Sequence record: LR756500.1
Length of the DNA: 64,000 nucleotides
Direction: 5' to 3' (one strand)
Shown here: piece after piece, positions 3,559 through 57,070 of the stretch
Layout: each line of letters starts with the position of its first letter
How positions within the stretch are numbered: the first letter of the stretch is position 1
The notes under the pieces: model-generated
The model's input: only the letters and a program-made list of their open reading frames with translations
Database searches by the model: none
Told to the model about the DNA's origin: nothing
Made by a program: the position numbers and the translations under genes

Positions 3559-3639
3559 TGGTGGAGGAAATGGGGTTCGAATCCCATGAAACCTCTTGAT
3601 TGCAAATCAAGTACTCTAGCCAGACTGAGCTATACCCCC
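3559..3639 (-). tRNA. tRNA-Ala(UGC)
   Basis: Anticodon arm CTTGA-TTTGCAA-TCAAG, G3:U70, encoded CCA. Confidence 0.9.
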
Positions 3640-3685
3640 CCTAATAAAAATTTAATTCACAGTATTCCAAAGAACATTTTTAAAA

Positions 3686-3717
3686 CAAAAAAAATCCGAT
3701 TTGATTAGAACCGGATT
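3686..3717 (-). terminator. Intrinsic terminator of attenuator 1
   Basis: AAATCCG...CGGATTT stem followed by a T-run on the minus strand. Confidence 0.75.
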
Positions 3718-3750
3718 TAATATTTTAGTTTATATTTATACAAACATATC

Positions 3751-3819
3751 TCATCCGGTAATAGGTGGTGTTCCTAAAGTTTGTGCTTGACCTAATGGAT
3801 ATGTAGATAATGTTTTCAT
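3751..3819 (-). CDS. Leader peptide 1, MKTLSTYPLGQAQTLGTPPITG (22 aa)
   Basis: Manually translated; lies between promoter 3857-3885 and terminator; codons match the downstream tRNA cluster. Confidence 0.75.
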   Translation of the reverse strand: MKTLSTYPLGQAQTLGTPPITG

Positions 3820-3856
3820 TTTTTTATATATAAAACCTTTTTTGTGTAATTTGATT

Positions 3857-3885
3857 ATTATATGCATTTTTTCTAAAATGTTTCG
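3857..3885 (-). promoter_or_regulatory. CGAAAC-N17-TATAAT promoter (also at 25512-25540, 33125-33153, 38561-38589, 46540-46568, 62277-62305; N18 at 46604-46633, 47689-47718, 57014-57043)
   Basis: Same two hexamers with 17-18 nt spacing found by eye in at least nine intergenic regions. Confidence 0.7.
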
Positions 3886-25213: not shown

Positions 25214-25285
25214 CTGGGATGAAGGGAATCGAACCCCTATCGATGCGTTAACAGCGCACAGCTCGGACCATTGAGCTACATCCCA
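25214..25285 (-). tRNA. tRNA-Asn(GUU)
   Basis: Anticodon arm GTGCG-CTGTTAA-CGCAT, G73. Confidence 0.92.
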
Positions 25286-25369
25286 ATATTTATTTTCAAT
25301 GAACTAATATGTAAATATAATAAAAAAGTAATTAATAAAAAAATCCAGCATGTCAAAGAACCATTTAAA

Positions 25370-25398
25370 CGAAAAAATCCAACTTGTTAGGTTGGATT
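25370..25398 (-). terminator. Intrinsic terminator of attenuator 2
   Basis: AATCCAAC-CTAACAA-GTTGGATT then T-run; boxA-like GTTCTTTGAC at 25352-25361. Confidence 0.75.
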
Positions 25399-25424
25399 CT
25401 TTAATATTATTTATATTGTTAACA

Positions 25425-25496
25425 TTAAGCCCAACTCGATTGGATGATATTATTATCATCTCTTCTATTGTCTATTATGTTAACTAAATTAATCAT
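25425..25496 (-). CDS. Leader peptide 2, MINLVNIIDNRRDDNNIIQSSWA (23 aa)
   Basis: Manually translated; between promoter 25512-25540 and terminator. Confidence 0.75.
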   Translation of the reverse strand: MINLVNIIDNRRDDNNIIQSSWA

Positions 25497-27416
25497 GTTC
25501 AAAAATTTATTATTATATGCAAATATAATAAAATGTTTCGCTTTGGTAATAAATTTATTTTTAGATATCATTTAAATTAGATTTACCTTCGCAGTTATCA
25601 GATTTAGCAACCATATTATCTCTTTTATCAATTATAGATTTAATTGATTCTTCTAATTTAAGACATTCAAATCCTTTTGATCCGCAACCTACATATTTAC
25701 AACAATTTTTACCTTGTCCTATTTTACAAACCTCTTTTATATGATTATTCATTTTTAATAATTTTAAGTTGTTGTTCAATATAATTAGCTATTTCAATAC
25801 ATTCTTCATCTTGTATCCAATAAAAATCTATTCCATTAATAGTTACTGAAAAATCAGAATCAGTTGGATCAAGAACTACATTTGTTAAACTTACAACTGG
25901 ATTGTGTCTTTCTTTATCTTGCTTTTCCCATCGTTCTTCAAATTTACTAATAACAGAAGGAACTTTGCTTATTTTATTTAATTTTTTTAATGCCTCTGAT
26001 TGATTTTCTTTTGGTTTTATAGGCCAATGATTATCATAATTAAAAAATTCGGTTGATTTTCTAGTAAGTCCATGAGTTATTTTTAATTCTAAACCACTCC
26101 AATCTGTAATTTTATTATAATTTTTTAAAATAAAAATTTTAGCACTATTAGCAACTATAACTAATGCACTAGTATATTTACTATATGTTTCATAAAAATC
26201 TTTATCAGTCCAAAATTCTGTAGATTTATAAGCATTCTCAAAATCTTCTTCTGATGTAAAACACGGAACAAATGAAGGTGAAAAATTACTCATTAATTTT
26301 ATTCGCTAAATTAGTCATTAAATTATTCATTTCATTTGTTGGTTCTTTACTACCATTTTTAAGTGCTTCTAATTCTTCATCAAATATAATAAATGGATCT
26401 TTTGTTATAGATGGAAATCCATTTGCTATTCCTTCTGCATCGAGTTCATTTATATTTAATAAAAAATCTTCAATAATTAATGGACATCCTTCATACTGTA
26501 AAATAGGATAAAAAGAAGCTTCTATATAAACAGTATCTCTACGTAAAACTTTTAAATCTTTAAAAGATTCATGATTATTTATTTGTTTAGTTATTTCTTC
26601 TTGTTGATCAGACCATGATGTAGGACCATCTTTTAATAAAAGTTTAATAACTTTATATTCTTCATCCATCCATACATATCTAAGTCTTCCTAACAATGGA
26701 TATTTTTTTTCAGGATCATGAGGTTGAGCCCAATTTATACAGGCTAATAAATATTTTCCTAGAGGATGTGGTTTAACAACCATATTAAACATTGACATAA
26801 TAATTTATTTTAAATTTATTAAACTGTATGTAGTATTATCAGAATTTAAAAAATATCCACTATTAAAAAGTTTAAGAATATTTTCTTTTTTAATATCTAT
26901 TATAATATTATGATCATTATATTTATACATTTTATAATAAATAGAATCTATATCATATATTAAAAATAGCTGTCTATCATTTTTAATTAAACATAAAAAT
27001 GTTCCAACTGGAATATTATACTGTGTATAAGTTACTAGTTCATTATTTTCATTAAACGATTCACCTAAAAATCTTATATTAGATTTATGTAATTCTTTAG
27101 CAGTTGGACCGCAAGATATAAATAAAACACCAACTAAAAGTATTAAAATATATTTATTCATAATTAAAATATCTAATGTTTCGTTTATAATGAATTTTTT
27201 TAACCATTTTTGATAATAAAAGATATTGTATAATATTTTTATAATTTTTATAATGAGCATTACCATCAAACATATAATGACTATTATTTAAGCATTTTTT
27301 ATTTTTGTCTATAATTCGTTTTACATCTCTCTGTATTATACCTTCAGGATTTTTTTTAATCTCCTCATACACAATCATAGCTGCTTCAAAATTTTCTTTT
27401 CTTAATTTTGGTATCA

Positions 27417-31050: not shown

Positions 31051-31059
31051 TCTTAAAAG

Positions 31060-31132
31060 TGGAACAACGTGGAATCGAACCACGATTGTTAGATTTTCAG
31101 TCTAATACCTTTACCACATTGGTTATTGTTCC
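31060..31132 (-). tRNA. tRNA-Phe(GAA)
   Basis: Anticodon arm TTAGA-CTGAAAA-TCTAA. Confidence 0.9.
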
Positions 31133-31195: not shown

Positions 31196-31792
31196 TTATC
31201 TTTTTCTTTTTCTACCTACTCTAGGCAAAGTATCTAATTTATCAATTAGTTCTAGATTAAGTTTTTTAATATCTTCTGTCAAAGAACCACTTACTGTTTT
31301 ATAATAATCAGATTTAATCCATTCTTCGTAAGGAGTATTTCCTCTTATTCTATTACATTTTCTGCAGCATGATACTAAGTTATCTGGATGCGATTCTCCT
31401 TCACTCTCCCATGTTATAATATGATCAACTGTTAAAGGAACATTATCAACTCCACAATATCTACATTTATAATTATCTCTTCTATAAACTTGCCAAGATA
31501 CTATGCTTTCAATATTTCTTTGAGATTTTCTCAAAATAACATTTTGTCCTTTTCTAATTCCAGATACTTCAACATTATCTAATTGAAATAATATTTTATG
31601 CCACGTATTTATATCCGGTCTTATTACTTTAATATCATTTGAAGTTATTTCTTCATCTGGTAATTTTACAATAAAACATTCACCTTCAGGAGAACTTAAA
31701 GCTATTCCACTTATAGTATTATAAATACCTAATTTTTTAATTTCGTTTTCATTCATCATTTTAAAAATTAAATTATCTTCCTCACTCTTCAA
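31196..31792 (-). CDS. HNH endonuclease domain protein
   Basis: VYRRDNYKCRYCG, LTVDHII, NLVSCCRKCN. Confidence 0.75.
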   Translation of the reverse strand: MKSEEDNLIFKMMNENEIKKLGIYNTISGIALSSPEGECFIVKLPDEEITSNDIKVIRPDINTWHKILFQLDNVEVSGIRKGQNVILRKSQRNIESIVSWQVYRRDNYKCRYCGVDNVPLTVDHIITWESEGESHPDNLVSCCRKCNRIRGNTPYEEWIKSDYYKTVSGSLTEDIKKLNLELIDKLDTLPRVGRKRKR

Positions 31793-31985
31793 TTTTATTT
31801 CTTAAACTTATCATAACAGAATTACCAAAGGAAGTAAGTTTATTTGTCCAACCTAACTCAATAAATCCAATAGTTTCTAAATCCTTTAAATAATTTATAT
31901 CAGGCGAAGTAAGATATTCATTACCAGTTCCTATTGATTTTAAAGTATTATATAATATTTTTTTTCCATTCAATAAAAAGTTTAG

Positions 31986-32057
31986 TTGCGGGGGCAGGAT
32001 TCGAACCTGCGACACACGGCTTATGAGGCCGTTGAGCTACCACTGCTCTACCCAGCA
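31986..32057 (-). tRNA. tRNA-Met(CAU), initiator-like D arm
   Basis: GAGCAGTGGTAGCTC D arm, ACGGC-CTCATAA-GCCGT; lacks the full GGG/CCC initiator stem. Confidence 0.75.
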
Positions 32058-32065
32058 ATTTAAAT

Positions 32066-32141
32066 TGGTTGGTCCGGTAGAAATTGCATCTACGGCCCAT
32101 AAATTAAAAGTTTATTGCTCTACTATCTGAGCTACGGACCA
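32066..32141 (-). tRNA. tRNA-Lys(UUU)
   Basis: ATAAA-CTTTTAA-TTTAT, encoded CCA; atypical T loop TGCAATT and D loop without GG. Confidence 0.85.
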
Positions 32142-32511
32142 ATTTATTTTTTATGACTATCTGGAATTATATTATATGCTTTCATTTCAAAAGGATATAA
32201 CCCTATAAACTCCATTTCATTAGGAATACATTTTTGAATTTCAATTGCTTCATCATCATTATGGCATGCTGCTAAACATACTAATCTTATTGCTTCTGTT
32301 ATATCATCTTCTGATTTAACAATATCACTTAAATGTTTACCTAATAAAGTTTTTACAATTTCTTTTGCTTTAATTAATTCCATTTTCAAAATTTCAAATA
32401 ACATGTAAATTTAATAAATTAGTTTTAATTTAAAAAATTTAGTTTAAAAATATACCGGTTTAATGTAAGGAAGGGGTCTAAATAATAAAGATAACCGGTA
32501 TATTTTTAGAG

Positions 32512-32921
32512 TGGAGCTGCAGGGGTTTGAACCCTGGTCCGTCGAAAGAACTATTAAAATTTCTACATGCTTAGTAACTTTTATCTTTTAATTATTTTAA
32601 TGGTAAGTTACATCCTAATAAAATACTTAGTTGTTATTTTTCGATTAAATATTTCAACTTATATTTAACTTATTTAAGTTCAGTTATGCCATAAAATTAA
32701 AGTACTTAAAACACTTTAAAGTATGACAGCAAATTTAAATACCTAGTATTCAATTTTGCAAGAGTGACTATTAAACAGTACTACCCGTTAAGCTGCCATT
32801 CTCATTTCAGCATTGTTGCCATTTATTATTTGTTATTCATTTCTGTTTAAAGAGAAAAATAAACAAATTCTCTGCATGCTTAATTAACAATTTACTAACA
32901 CGTCAATTCCATGTCAGCCCC
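32512..32921 (-). ncRNA. ssrA: tmRNA; tag ORF 32788-32820 reads (A)GNNAEMRMAA*
   Basis: GGGGCTG/CAGCTCC acceptor with G3:U70, GGAATTGAC 5' motif, T arm, tag ending AA-stop. Confidence 0.92.
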
Positions 32922-32980
32922 CATATTTTCAAAGAACATTATTTAAACTAATATGTAAATATAATAAATTAGTTTAAAAT

Positions 32981-33013
32981 AAAAAAACCCAATTCAAAAA
33001 ATGAATTGGGTTT
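32981..33013 (-). terminator. Intrinsic terminator of attenuator 4
   Basis: AAACCCAATTCA-TTTTT-TGAATTGGGTTT then T-run. Confidence 0.8.
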
Positions 33014-33041
33014 AATTTTAAATTATAGTCTAAGACCCAAT

Positions 33042-33104
33042 TCAGCCGAGTGAAGATTTTCCACTAAACTTTGCTATCATATGCATATCGAATCTTTGAA
33101 GCAT
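33042..33104 (-). CDS. Leader peptide 4, MLQRFDMHMIAKFSGKSSLG (20 aa)
   Basis: Manually translated; the stop codon begins TGAATTGGGT, a perfect 10-nt complement of the terminator 5' arm. Confidence 0.7.
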   Translation of the reverse strand: MLQRFDMHMIAKFSGKSSLG

Positions 33105-36100
33105 TTTTATTTTTTAAATTTATTATTATATACAAAAAATTAAAAATGTTTCGATATTTTATTCAAATACCTCATACTCTGAATTTTTTGTTTTAAATTT
33201 GCAATAGATCATATGATTATCTTTATCATATTTTTCTTCTATTATTTCGGTTACTTCCGTTGTTAACCAATAATCTTTAGTACTATAAGATCTTGCTGTT
33301 AGAGATCCTACTAAAAAAGAACATCCAACTACAGGTTTACCATTTCCAATAACTTCCTTTAATGTGCCATCTTCATTCCATTTAATAGCTTCGGCTCTGC
33401 TGCCAGAGTCACCTTGTCCGTCTTTTATTCTTCTTAATGTAGGCATTATTATTTATTTTAAAGTATCTGCAATAGCTATACTATCAGTTACTGTTACTGC
33501 AGGTATAGTAATTAATGTTGAATCAGTTGCTAATGAATCAATTGATGTTGTTACTGAACCTTCTGGTATACCACAAGATGATACCATTAAAATCATTGCT
33601 AAAATTAAAAATGTAAATTTCATTGTTTTTATTTTTTTATTATTTCTTATTATAGTATATTTATAAGATTATAATCATTAAAGGTTATACTATTAACCAT
33701 TATCAATTATCTCTTTAAATTGAGAATTACTGATTACTTAACTTAATATATATTAGTTTTAATTTTTAAAATTGTACTTGATCAACTATATTTTGATAAT
33801 TTTCATCTTTTTGCATATTCCATAATTTATTTTGTTGTTCTTCGGTAAAAAATCAAAATGGATAACAATGTACAGATAAAAATGCTATATCAATATTTTT
33901 AACATTTAATTGATCTGCAATATACTTAACATACATTAAATTTAAAATCCAACCACCAGGTCTATCAGATGTTGTAATTAATAAAAACATTGCAGCTGGA
34001 GTAAATTCTAAATTTAATTTAAAAACCTTTATTCTAGTAGAAATTATTTTATACGGAAATAAATCTTTTAAAGCGTTTAATAAAGATTCAGATGTTTCAC
34101 TCTCTTTATTAAGAGTAGAATTAATTATTATTTTCATTTGATCATCTGTTCCCTTTAATCTAGGTTGATCATTTTTTAAAAATGTATCAAAAATTTCTTT
34201 AATTCTTTTCATATTTTTATATTAAACCTTTTTCTGTAATATCATAGGGTATTACGGTATCTATTTCACTTTGTGTTTCTAAAAATTGTATTACAGTTAG
34301 TAATTCTTGACCTCTATCAATATTATCCCAAACACCACAAGATTCAATATTAGACGTAGCTTCTATAGCACTAAAATAATTAAATTCAAATATACCATTT
34401 CCACTTCCTTTAAAATCATTTGCCTTTTTTAAGATTTTTGGCGGTTTAAGTTGACATTTATTTGGATCAAAAATATCTATTCCAATGGTATCAAGTAATG
34501 TAATAAGATTTTTTATTAATTTTGGAAAATGATTTTTAATATATTTCCAACTATTTTCAGTATTATTAATATAACGCTTAATATCTGGATCATATAATAT
34601 CATGCTAGAATATAACATATTATCATATACCCTTACATTTTTAAATGGTTCATTATTAACAAGTATAACCATATCAAAATCATCTATAATATGTTTTAAA
34701 GCATTTACAGATAAGCTATATTGTTTATACATTAGTGCACTAAGAGAATATAAAAGATTTTGCACTAAATTAAATTCTTTAGTCCATTCGTTGTGTTTAG
34801 CTAAAAGCTCAGATTCTTTTAACATTTCTAATGGTTCTAAAAGAACCCCTAGTTTATTATCATTTAATACGTCAACTAATGAATTTAATGATTTAGAAAT
34901 CATATTCATTTGGGTTCTAGCATTATCATATATCGTAATTTCAGGATTATGAAATTTTGACATAGATTTAGGTTTTAATGTTTGTATATTTTCTACATGC
35001 ATATTAAATAGATTAAGATATATCCGATGACACGTGTTAAATTAAAAAATTGGTAATATGGTAATATTAAATAATAAAAAAGATTTAAACGGTATCACGG
35101 TTTAAATCTTGTATGCATTATTTTTTCCTTTCCCATAACCCTAAATTTTTATTATCCTCTGTTGTTTCTACAATTGGAAAAGACTTAGATTTAATTGTTG
35201 TTGTTCTTCCAATTTTAATAAAATATTTTTTAGTAGGATCAGGCTTATAAACTTTATCATATGGTTCATACTGTTCAATTTCTTCATAATTCATTCCAGT
35301 ATTATCATGATAATAAAACCATCTTCCACTTTGAAATAAAAATAAAGAAACTATAAAAATAGATATAAAATATGAAGGTAAAACTAATTTACTAATATCA
35401 AATTTTCTTTTATTTTTCATAACTCATAAAATTAAAAAGTATCACTATTCCATCCATTTTCTGTATACCATCTATTAGATACATTTAAATCAGTAGATCT
35501 AAGAGCTGACCAAATAGCTCCTAATCCTGCTCCTAAAATTAAAGAAATACCTAATGAAGGTAAAAAAGGCATGCCAATAATACCTAATATTGGTAATATT
35601 ACTAAATGTGCTATAATAATGCTATTAACAATCCAATGATTTAAAGAAGTTGCTCTTGTAAAACCTTTTATTCTTCTTGTAATTGTAAAATCATTACCCC
35701 ATGAAAATACATGTATAAATTTATCAGATTCTTGTAATGAATAAGGATTGCCATCTACTTTATAAAAAAGCATAGGATCTTTAGGAGCCTTTTGTAATTT
35801 AAAATTTTCTCTTGGAGCAAGAATAAAAAAATTTGCAGCATCACCACTCCATGTATCTCCATTTAAACCTACTCTTTTTCCGTATTTTTTAGCAAAACCT
35901 TTAATACGAGCCGGCACTTCAGGAGAAACGTTTCCTTCGTAATGATTAGTTTGTAAAAAGCGAAGATCATATTTAATAGCTAAATTTTTAATTTCTTTAA
36001 CTGTAAATACTTCTTCATTGTATTCAGTTTCTATTTTTTTACGTTCTAAATCTATTCCTCTAGCAGCTTCAACTTTTTTTACATTTTTATCTAGTCCTAA

Positions 36101-38198: not shown

Positions 38199-38286
38199 CA
38201 GAGAGAGCGGGATTTGAACCCGCGGATCAATTACTCGATCATCACCTTAGCAGGGTGACCTATTAAACCAGCTCTAGCACCTCTCT
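38199..38286 (-). tRNA. tRNA-Ser(GCU)
   Basis: TCACC-CTGCTAA-GGTGA, long variable arm, G73. Confidence 0.9.
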
Positions 38287-38291
38287 AATTT

Positions 38292-38543
38292 TTACGAATA
38301 TAATAAACTTGAAGATGAATCTGAATTTAAACTCGAATTTTCACTCAGATCAAGCGGTGTCATATGTTGATGTCCTTTAAGAGTCCATAAAACTAAACCT
38401 TTAGTAATTTTGATATAACCTTCACTCATAAGTTGATTAACTCTATTCTGACCATATATAGCATGTAAATTTGCTATAGTATTGCTCATATTGAATTCAC
38501 CATTCTTAATTGTATTCATTATTGAAATGTCTATCGATTTCAT
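38292..38543 (-). CDS. Small protein with Ser-rich C-terminus directly upstream of two tRNA-Ser genes
   Basis: Ends LSENSSLNSDSSSSLLYS; promoter at 38561-38589. Confidence 0.6.
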   Translation of the reverse strand: MKSIDISIMNTIKNGEFNMSNTIANLHAIYGQNRVNQLMSEGYIKITKGLVLWTLKGHQHMTPLDLSENSSLNSDSSSSLLYS

Positions 38544-39205
38544 TTGAACTTTTATTTTTTATTATATACAAAAAATTAATTTTGTTTCGAATTATTTATT
38601 TGCATAATGATTTTTATGCCATTTATATAAATTTTGATTTAAATAATGTTGAGCTAATTTATCATTTGGACAATTAATCTTATACCATTCACTTAATTCT
38701 TCTATAGTTGCAATTATAGGATAATTAATAATAACACGCATATTTCGCACTTCAACTCTATGCTTATGATAAAACCATTCCCAATTTTCTTTAGAATTAT
38801 TTAATTCGTATTGTGTTTGTGTTATATTATAAAATGAAGTGTTTAATAATAAAACACTTCCTAATTTAACTGTAGATTTTTCACTATTTTTATAAGCATT
38901 TAACCAATGCTTGCAAAAAGCAATAGCTAAATCTTTTTTATATTTCTTTTTTCTTTTTCTACTAAGTTTAAATTTTTGATATGGCTTTTGATATTGCGAA
39001 TTCACATCTTTGTTTTGATCTATACCAATTTTCACTTTTAATTAAATTAATTTTCTGTTCATTATCTAATGCAGACCAAGATATAGAATTAGGTTCTAAA
39101 ATATATGTAAAAGTATTTGTTCTTATATAATAAATTAAAACTTTTTGTCTTTTAGATGCTGCATCTAATTGCATTATTATATTTGTTATGTCTAAATCTT
39201 TCATA

Positions 39206-46369: not shown

Positions 46370-46506
46370 TGGCGGGGGAATTCGGGATCGAACCGAAACT
46401 GAATGTTTTCAACACATTTGCTCTACCAATTAAGCTTTTATACTGTAATAACTTAGAGTTTCTTTTCAGACTAATTTTAAAGTTATAGATGTAAATCTAT
46501 TCCCCC
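46370..46506 (-). tRNA. tRNA(UGA) in a class I body, interrupted by ~62-nt element (about 46436-46497) after position 9
   Basis: GGGGGAA-TA|insert|GCTT-AATTGGTA-GAGC-A-AATGT-GTTGAAA-ACATT; G73 plus CCA. Confidence 0.78.
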
Positions 46507-46672: not shown

Positions 46673-47662
46673 TTATTGCACATTAAATCCTATATTTCCT
46701 TTAGTTCCTAATTGACCATTTGCTTTTAACTTTCCATTCATCATTGATTTTATTTCATTAACAGCATCTTTAAAATCATATCCTAAAACAAATACAGATA
46801 AAAGAAGTTCTTTTAAATGATCTAAAGTAAATCCTTCGGATACTTTAACCCATTCATTTAAATTAATATTTTTTAATTCTTCTATACTTAATTTTTTTTC
46901 TATATAATATTTTCGTACTTCTTTAGAAGGTAATCCTATTTCATATCTTCTATCAAATCTTGAAGGTCTATTAGCTATTCTTTCTTCTAATTTTTCTTGA
47001 TAGTTTGTAGTTGCAATAGTTATAATATTATCTAACTTATTACTTCCATCTAATATTTGTAAAAGTTTTGTTAACAACGCTTTATCAACATTAATAAAAT
47101 TATCGATATCTTCTAATATAAGAATAATTTTTCTATCTGGTTCTATTTCTCGTAAAGGAACCATTATTTTATTAAAGTCGTATATGTGATCAGGTTGAGT
47201 TATATTGATTATAATACCTTTATGATCGTTAATTAAATTTTCACTTACTAATTGAATTAAAGAAGTTTTTCCACAACCTGGATGTCCATATAATATAATT
47301 CCACGTTTATAAATAAATGAATGATTATTATATTTGTTTTGACTTGTCCAGAATTTTTTAATATCTTCTAAAATCAATTCAAAATTATTATCTGGCAATC
47401 TAAGTATTTCTTCTGTTATAATATTTCTTTTTCTTAAGAAGAATTCATCTCTTCTAGGATCATATTCTAACTCATAAAATCCGCTTGGTAATTTTTCTTC
47501 GGTTTTTCCAGTTGGATAAAAAGCATTTCCTATTACACTCCATTGTACAACACCACTTTTATATTCAACACCATCATCATCAATATTAATTTCAGAAATA
47601 TTAATGTCTTCTTCATCTCCTAAAATATCACTTAAAGATATTCTTTTATTTTTGCTGCCCAT
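46673..47662 (-). CDS. AAA+ ATPase
   Basis: GHPGCGKT, LILEDID, TTNY, NRPSRFD. Confidence 0.85.
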   Translation of the reverse strand: MGSKNKRISLSDILGDEEDINISEINIDDDGVEYKSGVVQWSVIGNAFYPTGKTEEKLPSGFYELEYDPRRDEFFLRKRNIITEEILRLPDNNFELILEDIKKFWTSQNKYNNHSFIYKRGIILYGHPGCGKTSLIQLVSENLINDHKGIIINITQPDHIYDFNKIMVPLREIEPDRKIILILEDIDNFINVDKALLTKLLQILDGSNKLDNIITIATTNYQEKLEERIANRPSRFDRRYEIGLPSKEVRKYYIEKKLSIEELKNINLNEWVKVSEGFTLDHLKELLLSVFVLGYDFKDAVNEIKSMMNGKLKANGQLGTKGNIGFNVQ

Positions 47663-47710
47663 CCCATATAATTTAAAATTTAACAGTAATTATATGGGAT
47701 GGGCAGCAAA
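47651..47710. repeat. Perfect 23-bp inverted repeat covering the AAA+ ATPase start codon
   Basis: tttgctgcccatcccatataatt / aattatatgggatgggcagcaaa with a 14-nt loop. Confidence 0.92.
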
Positions 47711-47721
47711 TAGTTTCGTAA

Positions 47722-48591: not shown

Positions 48592-48652
48592 AACTAAATT
48601 TTTTAAATTTCTAATAAGTAAATATAATAAAAATGTTTTAATTAAAAATTTG

Positions 48653-48720
48653 TAGGACTAGTGGGAGCTGAACCCACGTTATCGGTTTTAGAGACCGATT
48701 TCTAACCACTAGATAGTCCC
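48653..48720 (-). tRNA. Amber suppressor tRNA(CUA) with tRNA-Pyl-like geometry
   Basis: GGGACTA / TCTA-GTGGT-TAGA / ATCGGT-CTCTAAA-ACCGAT / AAC / GTGGG-TTCAGCT-CCCAC / TAGTCCT-A; 68 nt. Confidence 0.8.
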
Positions 48721-48725
48721 CTTTG

Positions 48726-48909
48726 TGATTGTAGAAGGACTCGAACCAACAACCCCTCACTTTCAAATTACTGACAAAAATACTATTAAGCGTCCCTAAA
48801 TTCATTTTGTTTTTATTCTATTTATTATAAATATATCATCCACTTATGCGCTATAAGCTTATATACACCTACAATAAAAATAAGACTCTAACCATTGAGC
48901 TATACAACC
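48726..48909 (-). tRNA. tRNA gene with ~112-nt insertion in the anticodon loop; anticodon unresolved
   Basis: Acceptor GGTTGTA/TACAATC, intact D and T arms, stem CTTAT/GTGAG separated by about 48764-48875. Confidence 0.7.
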
Positions 48910-48946
48910 ATGTAAATATAATTAAAAAGATCGAAATATAAAAGGC

Positions 48947-52243: not shown

Positions 52244-52314
52244 AGGGCCTAGAGGGATTCAAACCCCCGTAGTCAGCTTTGCAGGCTGCGACCTAATCAC
52301 TCGGACATAGGCCC
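52244..52314 (-). tRNA. tRNA-Cys(GCA)
   Basis: CAGC-CTGCAAA-GCTG, U73. Confidence 0.88.
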
Positions 52315-52321
52315 ATATCGT

Positions 52322-53278
52322 TTATCTATTAAAAAACTCTTTTTCGTTATAATACAACATACTTAATCTAGTAGCAAATGTTTTATCAGATGTACTATCT
52401 CCTATCATTATACATTGTTTAGGATCTAACATATATTTATATATTAGATCTATACCCATTCCACTTTGAGGTTTTCTACAATAACAAATTTCCTTAGGTA
52501 TACTATGAGGACAATATTTATAATCATCAATAATATTATTCATTAAAGAATTTGTTTCTTTAATTATATCTTCAACGTTATCTATAAAGTGACCTTTATT
52601 AACTCCTGATTGATTAGTTACTGCTAAAATTAAAAATCCTCTATTTTTATATTTTTGTAAAATGCTTACGGTATTTTCTAAAATATATTGATCATTTAAG
52701 TTAATTGGATATTTTTCTCCACTAACTGTTTTTCTAACAGTACCATCTAAATCAATTAATAATGCTTTATTTTTTAAATTAGTATCCCAAATTCTTTCAA
52801 ATTCTGTAATTACTAATTCATTATAATCTGTAACTTTAGGCTTTTTAAATTCTTTTGAATACTTAAATATTGCTGGAAGAACCCAAACATTTGGATTATT
52901 TTTAAATATAATAGGAATAGTATCTGTATAATTATGAAAGCTTCCTGTAATTTTTTTAATTCTAATATAAGAATTAATTAATGCATCTTCTTTAGAAGTA
53001 TTCATTAAATGAAATCCTATTGTGTGTTTATGATATTTACAATTATCTATAAATAAATATCTTGTATTTTCATTAGGAAGAGTTGCATCAATTACTATTT
53101 TCTTAACACCGTCTTTTATATGTTTTTCATGAAGTGCAGCTAAATCTATCATAGAAATATTTAAGCTATCTCTATTTAAAATTAAATATCCTAATTTTTC
53201 GTATTCTTTTGAAATACTAGATTTTCCACTTGCTGGATATCCTCCAATTAAAACAGTATCAGTATTACAAAGTTTCAT
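52322..53278 (-). CDS. Polynucleotide kinase/3'-phosphatase (P-loop kinase + HAD domain)
   Basis: GYPASGKS, VIDAT, LIDLDGT, TNQSG, CRKP, IGD. Confidence 0.75.
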   Translation of the reverse strand: MKLCNTDTVLIGGYPASGKSSISKEYEKLGYLILNRDSLNISMIDLAALHEKHIKDGVKKIVIDATLPNENTRYLFIDNCKYHKHTIGFHLMNTSKEDALINSYIRIKKITGSFHNYTDTIPIIFKNNPNVWVLPAIFKYSKEFKKPKVTDYNELVITEFERIWDTNLKNKALLIDLDGTVRKTVSGEKYPINLNDQYILENTVSILQKYKNRGFLILAVTNQSGVNKGHFIDNVEDIIKETNSLMNNIIDDYKYCPHSIPKEICYCRKPQSGMGIDLIYKYMLDPKQCIMIGDSTSDKTFATRLSMLYYNEKEFFNR

Positions 53279-56738: not shown

Positions 56739-56822
56739 GGTACCTGATAGGATTCGAACCTACGATGTTTCTAATGTATAGAGCCACAATCTATTGCCTT
56801 CGGCCGCTAGGCTACAGATACC
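56739..56822 (-). tRNA. tRNA-His(GUG) with 14-nt variable region
   Basis: G-1:C73, ATAGA-TTGTGGC-TCTAT. Confidence 0.88.
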
Positions 56823-56845
56823 ATATTAAATATTTCAAAGAACAA

Positions 56846-56880
56846 AATAAAAAGGTTCAAATCTTGCGATTTGAACCTTT
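56846..56880 (-). terminator. Intrinsic terminator of attenuator 3
   Basis: AAAGGTTCAAATC-GCAA-GATTTGAACCTTT then T-rich; boxA-like GTTCTTTGAA at 56834-56843. Confidence 0.85.
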
Positions 56881-56910
56881 AAATATAGAATTATATAGTT
56901 AATGCACAAA

Positions 56911-56985
56911 TCACATAATATTAATGTTCACCTCTTCTAGAAGATGTTCCCAAATATGAATGATATGTACAGAAATTGCTTTCAT
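56911..56985 (-). CDS. Leader peptide 3, MKAISVHIIHIWEHLLEEVNINIM (24 aa)
   Basis: Manually translated; between promoter 57014-57043 and terminator. Confidence 0.78.
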   Translation of the reverse strand: MKAISVHIIHIWEHLLEEVNINIM

Positions 56986-57070
56986 TTGTTTATATATTAA
57001 AATTTTATTTGTAATTATATGCAAATATATATAAAAAGTTTCGCATTTACAAATTTATTTTAAATTATTT

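Follow-up and report, generated by a model that had tools for sequence, protein, structure and literature searches.

In enterobacteria, the operons for amino acid biosynthesis (trpL, hisL, leuL, thrL and pheL) and the pheST synthetase operon are preceded by leader-peptide attenuators. In these attenuators, a short ORF follows the promoter, four regions form mutually exclusive 1:2/3:4 and 2:3 pairings, an intrinsic terminator lies before the regulated genes, the stop codon is placed so that a terminating ribosome covers region 2, and sensor codons are found upstream of that point. T-box riboswitches, which are tRNA-sensing attenuators of Gram-positive synthetase genes, also respond to shortage of charged tRNA through a choice between terminator and antiterminator. 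Why phages carry tRNA genes and when they use them is still an open question, for which the proposed answers include codon-usage compensation, host tRNA decay and escape from anticodon nucleases. In this study, we analyzed a window of 64 kb from a 429-kb groundwater phage, in which a predicted leader-peptide attenuator precedes the tmRNA gene. It is one of four such predicted units at the heads of the tRNA clusters of this phage, which suggests that the phage makes its own translation RNAs on demand when ribosomes stall.

Results

The elements of the tmRNA unit, referred to as unit D, were all found on the minus strand. They are listed below; the promoters are motif matches and the structures are thermodynamic predictions.

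33125..33153, minus strand: predicted promoter P1 (CGAAAC, 17 nt, TATAAT), which starts 5 nt after the stop codon of the upstream gene for a 95-aa protein.
33042..33104, minus strand: leader ORF of 20 codons plus TGA, translating to MLQRFDMHMIAKFSGKSSLG.
33087..33096, minus strand: region 1 (AAGATTCGAT, codons 3-6), which pairs with region 2 when no ribosome is present.
33044..33070, minus strand: small central hairpin inside the leader (codons 12-20), a possible RNA polymerase pause hairpin whose role is only inferred.
33032..33044, minus strand: region 2, starting at the leader stop codon, of which TGAATTGGGT (33044..33035) pairs with the terminator 5' arm as antiterminator and ATTGGGTCTT (33041..33032) pairs with region 1.
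32978..33013, minus strand: intrinsic terminator (regions 3 and 4) with a 12-bp stem, a 5-nt loop and a T-run.
32954..32967, minus strand: core of a second predicted promoter, P2 (TTATTATATTTACA), of the main promoter class of the genome; the T-run of the terminator doubles as its upstream T-rich element.
32924..32938, minus strand: conserved motif TGTTCTTTGAAAATA just before the RNA gene.
32511..32921, minus strand: tmRNA gene with the tag peptide GNNAEMRMAA.
32445..32508, minus strand: 16-bp hairpin with a 32-nt loop followed by a T-run, directly after tmRNA (-17.2 kcal/mol), which could be a terminator or a processing site.
32404..32417, minus strand: core of predicted promoter P3 (main class, 33.4 bits) ahead of orf86, tRNA-Lys and tRNA-Met.
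31985..32141, minus strand: tRNA-Lys(UUU) and tRNA-Met(CAU).
31059..31132, minus strand: tRNA-Phe(GAA), separated from Lys/Met by an HNH endonuclease gene (31792..31196).

Our results confirmed the observation of the first-pass annotation, which had described a leader with 3 Met, 2 Phe and 2 Lys that ends in a perfect 10-nt complement of the terminator 5' arm, a second promoter-like box after the terminator, and tmRNA, Lys(UUU), two Met(CAU) and Phe(GAA) tRNAs downstream. The leader contained 3 Met, 2 Phe and 2 Lys and ended in TGA. It used the first ATG after P1 and had an A-rich start context without a Shine-Dalgarno sequence, similar to the other genes seen here. The tmRNA gene was identified by ARAGORN and by Rfam RF00023, with 95.5 bits over model positions 1-374, and was followed by Lys(UUU), Met(CAU), Phe(GAA) and Met(CAU). 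The core of P2 scored 34.7 bits on the main promoter matrix of the genome, ranking 33 of 72 sites. The P1 type of promoter occurred 12 times on the minus strand, and five of them sat directly before the leader ORFs of units A-E.

TGAATTGGGT was an exact copy of the 3' arm of the terminator and so a perfect 10-nt complement of its 5' arm. GAATTGGGT occurred only at these three places in the 64-kb window, against 0.44 expected. The terminator had a predicted energy of -15.1 kcal/mol and lay 28 nt after the stop codon. Among 80 terminator-like hairpins genome-wide, it was the only one with an upstream arm copy longer than 6 nt. When the terminator of unit B was added (81 hairpins), its antiterminator duplex of -14.0 kcal/mol was the strongest (z -5.0), and 0 of 300 random windows matched it. 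Folding predicted 1:2 plus 3:4 for the naked RNA, 2:3 when a ribosome masked region 1 and 3:4 when a ribosome sat on the stop codon; 2:3 was also the predicted fold when region 4 was absent. The 1:2 duplex was -11.5 kcal/mol and 3.2% of random windows did as well, which is moderate support for this pairing.

Unit D was one of four units with the same build. The others were units A (His/Glu/Val/Trp), B (Asn/Asp/Arg/Ile2) and C (Ala/Leu/Pro/Tyr/Gln/Gly/Thr). Each had a CGAAAC-N17/18-TATAAT promoter, which also preceded the Ser-unit ORF, a leader of 20-24 codons, a gap of 26-32 nt from stop to terminator, region 2 at or beside the stop codon, and 1:2, 2:3 and 3:4 alternative pairings. The four leaders shared no peptide similarity, only design. 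The leader-by-cluster codon matrix was diagonal and frame-specific. In the window where a stalled ribosome would leave region 2 free, the codons read by the downstream tRNAs were 9/19 in A (P 1.3e-4), 12/15 in B (P 3.4e-6), 12/15 in C (P 1.8e-5) and 6/15 in D (P 0.027), while the last 4-7 codons held almost none (0/4 in D). Over the whole ORF, the Lys/Met/Phe codons of D were 6/19 (P 0.08). Thus, the match of the D leader is weak and only nominal.

The same module of promoter, leader, terminator and TGTTCTTTG was found at the heads of tRNA arrays in unrelated metagenomic phage contigs, with different leaders that matched their own arrays. For instance, MNKTINILPISLRPSSRRS preceded Ser, Arg(UCU), Pro, Ile(UAU) and Met (10/18, P 1.6e-4). 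Moreover, the huge phage LR756511 had an analogous unit with 8 Ser, 5 Leu and 2 Tyr before its Ser/Leu/Tyr tRNAs (P 1.1e-5), with 1:2, 2:3 and 3:4 folds. The motif before the tmRNA gene of unit D also followed the terminators of units A, B and C and of the foreign phage units. Neither a -35 nor a Bacteroidetes -7 reading of TGTTCTTTG as a promoter worked, as no consistent -10 followed and the distance to the RNA 5' end varied from 6 to 25 nt.

No relative carrying this particular tmRNA unit was identified in the phage, IMG/VR, metagenome or protein collections, apart from an identical copy. A blastn search against 50,697 phage records found only LR756500.1, which was 100% identical. IMG/VR scans with the upstream 95-aa protein, two neighboring proteins and two tmRNA patterns gave nothing useful, and one chance hit (record L034) was not a tmRNA. 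The 95-aa protein had 56 homologs at 51-72% identity, but all seven contexts fetched lacked tmRNA or any synteny. Homologs of the 354-aa protein upstream of unit A likewise lacked synteny. A second groundwater sample carried the same strain with no substitutions, and no RNA-seq run was found to hold this phage. Thus, no conservation or covariation evidence supports this unit. LR756511 and LR756504 had tmRNA genes without a leader unit, LR756501 and LR756502 had no tmRNA hit above the cut-off, and the IMG/VR records of the related module family had no tmRNA.

Two further readings of the leader were rejected. Reading TGA as Trp would extend the leader, but the longest ORFs were unchanged and code 11 already gave a dense coding map. 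The similarity of DMHMIA in the leader to EMRMAA in the tmRNA tag was weak at the nucleotide level and is treated as coincidence.

Discussion

The interpretation in the first-pass annotation, that tmRNA is induced upon ribosome stalling through a Met/Phe/Lys leader, is partly supported by our results. The architecture is that of a complete classical leader-peptide attenuator, but the Met/Phe/Lys match is weaker than claimed, the level of tmRNA cannot depend on the leader alone given the typical promoter between terminator and gene, and a hairpin with a T-run and a further promoter separate tmRNA from the Lys/Met/Phe tRNAs. With moderate confidence, we propose that this unit is a ribosome-mediated transcription attenuator that adds conditional read-through into tmRNA, and perhaps into the Lys/Met/Phe tRNAs. 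In this model, transcripts from P1 and from the operon upstream would carry the leader ORF. If the leading ribosome runs to the TGA stop, it would cover region 2, the 12-bp terminator would form and transcription would end. If the ribosome stalls at codons 2-16 because a charged tRNA is scarce, it would cover region 1 and leave region 2 free to pair with the 5' arm of the terminator (10 bp), and RNA polymerase would read on through P2 into tmRNA and, if the hairpin after tmRNA is leaky, into tRNA-Lys, Met and Phe. With no translation at all, region 1 would pair with region 2 and the terminator would form. P2 would give tmRNA a second, leader-independent supply, probably at another stage of infection. 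The sequence elements, their statistical rarity, the alternative predicted folds, the shared design and its presence in other phages are demonstrated by this analysis, whereas translation of the leader, promoter activity, the codons that act as sensors, the dependence of read-through on translation and tRNA charging, and how far read-through extends are inferred.

An alternative, which we consider unlikely, is that the attenuator is real but is a generic stalling sensor for tmRNA alone. In this view, any elongation arrest in codons 2-16 would raise tmRNA, the Lys/Met/Phe resemblance would be chance and read-through would stop at the hairpin after tmRNA. The leader holds 13 different amino acids, its Lys/Met/Phe match is only nominal, and the hairpin with T-run and a fresh promoter follow tmRNA. 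tRNA scarcity and rare codons are reported to trigger SsrA tagging, so tmRNA demand would rise with any tRNA shortage. However, the leaders of the sister units are tuned to specific tRNA sets, and all six matches in D fall in the control window and none in the tail. In unit B the matched tRNAs are spread over 4.5 kb with ORFs and a promoter between them, so dispersed targets are normal in this system.

Slightly less likely is that the hairpin merely ends the upstream operon (the gene for the 95-aa protein and its neighbors), that the 10-nt copy is a duplication relic, that the ORF is not translated and that tmRNA is made only from P2. P2 is a typical main-class promoter, the T-run of the terminator overlaps its upstream element as at many terminator-promoter junctions in this genome, the codon match is weak and conservation data are lacking. 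Against this reading, a separate promoter of the leader-specific class sits 5 nt after the stop codon of the upstream gene, the ORF length, stop position and spacing match three units with strong codon evidence, and the antiterminator is a z -5 outlier. Moreover, unit B also has a P2 behind its terminator, yet its leader is strongly matched, so a second promoter does not argue against attenuation. Finally, it is very unlikely that the stretch from P1 to the terminator is a gene in its own right, either a small RNA of roughly 130 nt or a 20-residue micropeptide without a role in read-through, because, although a promoter and terminator bracket a short transcript and sub-threshold Rfam hits to sRNA families exist, those hits are driven by the terminator, no Rfam family reaches its threshold, and neither product explains why the composition of the four leaders tracks the downstream tRNAs.

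A broader possibility, which remains tentative, is that phages with large tRNA sets gate those genes, and here a tmRNA gene too, with leader-peptide attenuators whose codons mirror the tRNAs behind them. The phage would then supply a tRNA only when ribosomes stall for lack of it, for instance after host shut-off or cleavage by anticodon nucleases. If so, this unit would be the first tmRNA gene under ribosome-stalling control, coupling ribosome rescue to tRNA scarcity. The module also carries a conserved element (TGTTCTTTGA) shared across unrelated phages. Full-text searches of an incomplete literature collection found no description of attenuators before phage tRNA genes or before any ssrA gene. 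A switch that reads tRNA supply directly at the ribosome and answers by transcribing the matching tRNAs would show that phage tRNA expression is demand-driven, and the leader sequences would say which tRNAs the phage expects to run short of. The design can be searched for in any phage genome with a tRNA array, and it offers compact, codon-programmable sensors of tRNA availability.

Similar to the leader-peptide attenuators of enterobacteria, unit D has a short ORF after the promoter, mutually exclusive pairings, an intrinsic terminator and a stop codon placed so that a terminating ribosome would cover region 2. Different from them, the genes behind the switch are RNA genes and not those of biosynthetic enzymes or synthetases, the switch sits in a phage, and the charged tRNA that would be sensed is the product class being supplied. 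The sister leaders mix several codon types that mirror a whole tRNA cluster and not a run of one amino acid. There is also the extra conserved TGTTCTTTG element after the terminator and, in unit D, a second promoter. No sequence similarity to any Rfam leader family was found. In the comparison with T-box riboswitches, no Rfam match for a specifier structure or T-box was found in 32900..33200 at the gathering threshold or at E up to 5, and sensing here would go through a translating ribosome and not through direct tRNA binding. Similar to bacterial ssrA and other phage tmRNA genes, the downstream gene is a full-length tmRNA with an alanine-rich tag ending in AA, but the tmRNA genes of LR756511 and LR756504 are preceded by a plain promoter or by a tRNA, with no leader or terminator. 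Units A, B and C and the modules in the metagenomic phage contigs L049, L055 and L069 share with unit D the promoter type, leader length, spacing, terminator and the TGTTCTTTG motif before the first RNA gene. Different from these, unit D has the strongest antiterminator but the weakest codon match and is the only one that heads a tmRNA, and only unit B shares with it a second promoter behind the terminator.

Genomic Context of the tmRNA Unit

The window comprises bases 324,729-388,728 of a single 429,198-bp contig with 24% G+C, which is a virus record from a groundwater metagenome. A 1.9-kb stretch around the tmRNA unit was identical in the 462-kb "uncultured phage" LR756500.1. All 27 genes identified by ARAGORN in the genome, comprising 26 tRNAs and one tmRNA, are on the minus strand in or just beside the window. 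In addition, Rfam identified three tRNA matches there that were not listed by ARAGORN. Standard code 11 gave a dense coding map, and the longest ORFs were the same under code 4. The stop codons were 81% TAA, 13% TGA and 5% TAG. On the minus strand, a 119-aa ORF at 34212..33757 ends in TGA, but its frame stays open for another 32 plausible-looking codons until TAA, which could be read-through or chance.

The tRNA genes of the window also include unusual members, all on the minus strand. At 48924..48652, a tRNA-like gene appears to be split by a long insertion, with its 5' half at about 48924 and its 3' half ending at about 48725. It is directly followed by a suppressor-type tRNA with anticodon CUA (48720..48652). 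TAG makes up only 5% of the stop codons, and reading TAG as sense lengthened few ORFs. At 46506..46376, an odd tRNA-like gene has a GGGGGAA acceptor strand that is separated from the D arm by about 60 nt of extra sequence, and its 3' end is TTCCCCCGCCA. Rfam matched only model positions 6-65 of this gene, and two tandem CGAAAC-type promoters precede it. At 52244..52314, tRNA-Cys(GCA) was found by Rfam but missed by ARAGORN. The neighboring ORF at 53278..52325 matches a polynucleotide kinase family, which hints at tRNA repair.

Read on the minus strand, the region upstream of tmRNA runs in the following order:
33161..33159, stop codon of a 95-aa gene
33153..33125, promoter motif CGAAAC-N17-TATAAT
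33104..33042, ORF of 20 codons, MLQRFDMHMIAKFSGKSSLG, ending in TGA
33044..33035, TGAATTGGGT, starting at that stop codon
33013..32978, 12-bp hairpin with a 5-nt loop and a T-run
32967..32954, core of a copy of the commonest promoter motif of the genome (P2)
32938..32924, TGTTCTTTGAAAATA
32921..32511, tmRNA (Rfam 95.5 bits, tag GNNAEMRMAA)

The 10-mer at 33044..33035 is an exact copy of the 3' arm of the terminator, and GAATTGGGT occurs nowhere else in the window. Of 80 terminator-like hairpins in the genome, no other has an upstream arm copy longer than 6 nt. When the terminator of unit B, one of the sister units described below, was added to make 81 hairpins, RNAduplex showed that the upstream segment pairs with the 5' arm at -14.0 kcal/mol, which is z -5.0 against random windows and the best of the 81. 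Everything described in the first-pass annotation, including the leader that ends in a perfect 10-nt complement of the 5' arm of the terminator, the second promoter-like box after the terminator and the tmRNA, Lys, Met and Phe genes downstream, is present, and it is not chance.

Predicted Alternative Folds

The naked RNA is predicted to fold with codons 3-6 paired to 33041..33032 (1:2) and with the terminator formed (3:4). When the 5' part was masked as by a stalled ribosome and region 4 was not yet made, the 10-bp 2:3 antiterminator was the predicted structure. With a ribosome on the stop codon, only the terminator remained. Only 3.2% of random windows paired with region 2 as well as region 1 does. 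In addition, a small hairpin in codons 12-20 could act as a pause site, which is inferred only.

Four Units With One Design

The same analysis of every tRNA cluster head identified three more units with one design. Units A, B and C are located at 57043..56821, 25540..25285 and 3885..3639, respectively, on the minus strand. Together with the tmRNA unit (unit D), they head four of the main clusters of the tRNA island.

Leader units at the heads of the tRNA clusters: unit; leader coordinates; leader peptide; downstream tRNAs
A; 56985..56911; MKAISVHIIHIWEHLLEEVNINIM; His, Glu, Val, Trp
B; 25496..25425; MINLVNIIDNRRDDNNIIQSSWA; Asn, Asp, Arg(UCU) and a CAU tRNA
C; 3819..3751; MKTLSTYPLGQAQTLGTPPITG; Ala, Leu, Pro, Tyr, Gln, Gly, Thr, Gly
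D; 33104..33042; MLQRFDMHMIAKFSGKSSLG; tmRNA, Lys, Met, Phe, Met

The CAU tRNA of unit B possesses C4-G69 and C5-G68, which are the acceptor-stem pairs recognized in tRNA-Ile2 of E. coli, and is therefore inferred to be tRNA-Ile2. All four leaders have 20-24 codons, a gap of 26-32 nt between stop codon and terminator, region 2 at or next to the stop codon, and the three predicted alternative folds. Moreover, each is preceded by CGAAAC-N17/18-TATAAT. This promoter type occurs 12 times on the minus strand, of which five head the leaders of units A-D and an ORF before the two Ser tRNAs. The latter, within the region 38589..38286 on the minus strand, is an 83-codon ORF whose last 17 residues include 9 Ser. 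Of its last 20 codons, 8 are read by the two Ser tRNAs that start 5 nt after its stop codon (P 9e-7). However, no terminator is found between them, so if this ORF is regulatory it works differently. A CGAAAC-type promoter is also found at 47718..47640 on the minus strand, where its spacer and -10 region form a 19-nt perfect inverted repeat with the transcript start region, which looks like an operator or a 5' hairpin ahead of an ATPase gene.

A matrix of leaders against clusters, in which only the codons read by the downstream anticodons under standard wobble were counted, was diagonal. The matches were 9/23 for A, 10/22 for B, 15/21 for C and 6/19 for D, with off-diagonal cells at or below expectation. 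The match was also frame-specific. The count was then restricted to the codons where a stalled ribosome would still leave region 2 free, a window that is set by the mechanism and not by the data. The matches were then 9/19 for A (P 1.3e-4), 12/15 for B (P 3.4e-6), 12/15 for C (P 1.8e-5) and 6/15 for D (P 0.027), while the last 4-7 codons held 0, 0, 3 and 0 matches, respectively. Thus, the leaders of A, B and C are strongly enriched in codons read by the tRNAs behind them.

A conserved motif, (T)GTTCTTTGA, is shared among the units. It was found at 56844..56836, 25361..25354, 25307..25294, 3676..3668 and 32938..32930, where it lies 0-18 nt after the T-run of the attenuator and 6-25 nt before the first RNA gene. 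It is also shared with unrelated metagenomic phages (contigs L049, L055 and L069), where it extends to GTTCTTTGACATACTGG. It does not fit a promoter, and its role could lie in processing, termination efficiency or protein binding.

Similar Units in Other Phages

Our searches did not identify any relative of this phage, but the design was found in others. In the distant 595-kb phage LR756511 (41% G+C), an analogous unit is located around 437,520-437,900 of LR756511.1 on the minus strand. A TTGACA-type promoter and a 27-codon leader with 8 Ser (all six Ser codons), 5 Leu and 2 Tyr precede a GC-rich terminator, behind which lie four Ser, five Leu and two Tyr tRNAs (P 1.1e-5). The 1:2, 2:3 and 3:4 folds were also predicted. 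Furthermore, a scan of metagenome contigs for the promoter plus the post-terminator motif returned the three expected sites in this genome and 37 foreign loci, six of which carry large tRNA arrays with the same module.

The leaders of these foreign units differ from those of units A-D and follow their own arrays. For instance, one before Ser(UGA), Arg(UCU), Pro, Ile(UAU) and Met has eleven consecutive cognate-type codons (10/18 strict, P 1.6e-4). One before two Thr, two Ile and two Val tRNAs has six Thr codons (P 0.004), and one before a 15-tRNA array contains all 15 of its amino acids (24/34, P 0.001). However, two before Glu/Asp arrays are only locally enriched (P 0.15-0.18). Moreover, six IMG/VR contigs from other samples carry the 15-tRNA unit with a nearly invariant leader. 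The phage contigs with this promoter-leader-terminator-motif module (metagenome contigs L049, L055, L056, L063, L073 and L069, and IMG/VR contigs L075-L080) have 34-39% G+C and tRNA arrays of up to 23 genes. Thus, the module is conserved and portable, and a weak whole-ORF match such as that of unit D lies within the range of the family.

Features of the tmRNA Unit

Different from the other three units of the phage, unit D has the strongest antiterminator and the weakest codon match. P2, which sits between terminator and tmRNA, scored 34.7 bits on the main promoter matrix and is typical (rank 33 of 72). tmRNA can therefore be made without read-through. However, unit B has the same arrangement and a strongly matched leader, so a second promoter does not speak against attenuation. 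It suggests two modes of supply, possibly at different times, although the timing is inferred only.

Directly after tmRNA is a 16-bp hairpin with a 32-nt loop and a T-run, followed by another main-class promoter, an 86-aa ORF, tRNA-Lys and tRNA-Met, an HNH endonuclease gene (31792..31196, minus strand) and tRNA-Phe. The HNH endonuclease gene is probably a mobile insertion that split an older tmRNA-Lys-Met-Phe cluster. Given that the matched tRNAs of unit B are also spread over 4.5 kb with ORFs and a promoter between them, read-through from the leader into the Lys, Met and Phe tRNAs cannot be excluded. Finally, the tmRNA genes of the phages LR756511 and LR756504 have no such unit.

Proposed Mechanism and Comparison With Known Systems

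Most likely, unit D is a classical ribosome-mediated attenuator, a reading that we hold with moderate confidence. In this view, smooth translation to the stop codon would give termination, a stall in codons 2-16 would give antitermination and extra tmRNA transcription, and no translation would give termination. The sequence elements, their statistics and the shared design come from the analysis itself, whereas the structures are predictions, the promoters are motif matches and, without expression data, the function is inferred. The tmRNA unit itself has no comparative support, and its standing rests on its own statistics and on belonging to a family that does have such support. Lys, Met and Phe are the best candidates for the sensed tRNAs, but a generic response to any shortage within the window of control codons fits as well. 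tRNA scarcity and rare codons are reported to provoke SsrA tagging. Raising tmRNA when ribosomes stall for lack of a tRNA is therefore a coherent circuit, as proposed in the first-pass annotation, whose interpretation is supported in part. A plain terminator with a chance repeat is considered unlikely.

Full-text searches, although of an incomplete literature collection, found no description of such units before phage tRNA or tmRNA genes, so that novelty is probable and not proven. The unit would work like the trp, his, leu, thr and pheA leaders, and every structural criterion that can be tested in silico is satisfied. No sequence match to any Rfam leader or T-box family was found. The unit differs from these systems in what it would control, namely RNA genes of the translation apparatus in a phage, in using mixed codon sets that mirror a tRNA cluster, and in the conserved TGTTCTTTG element.
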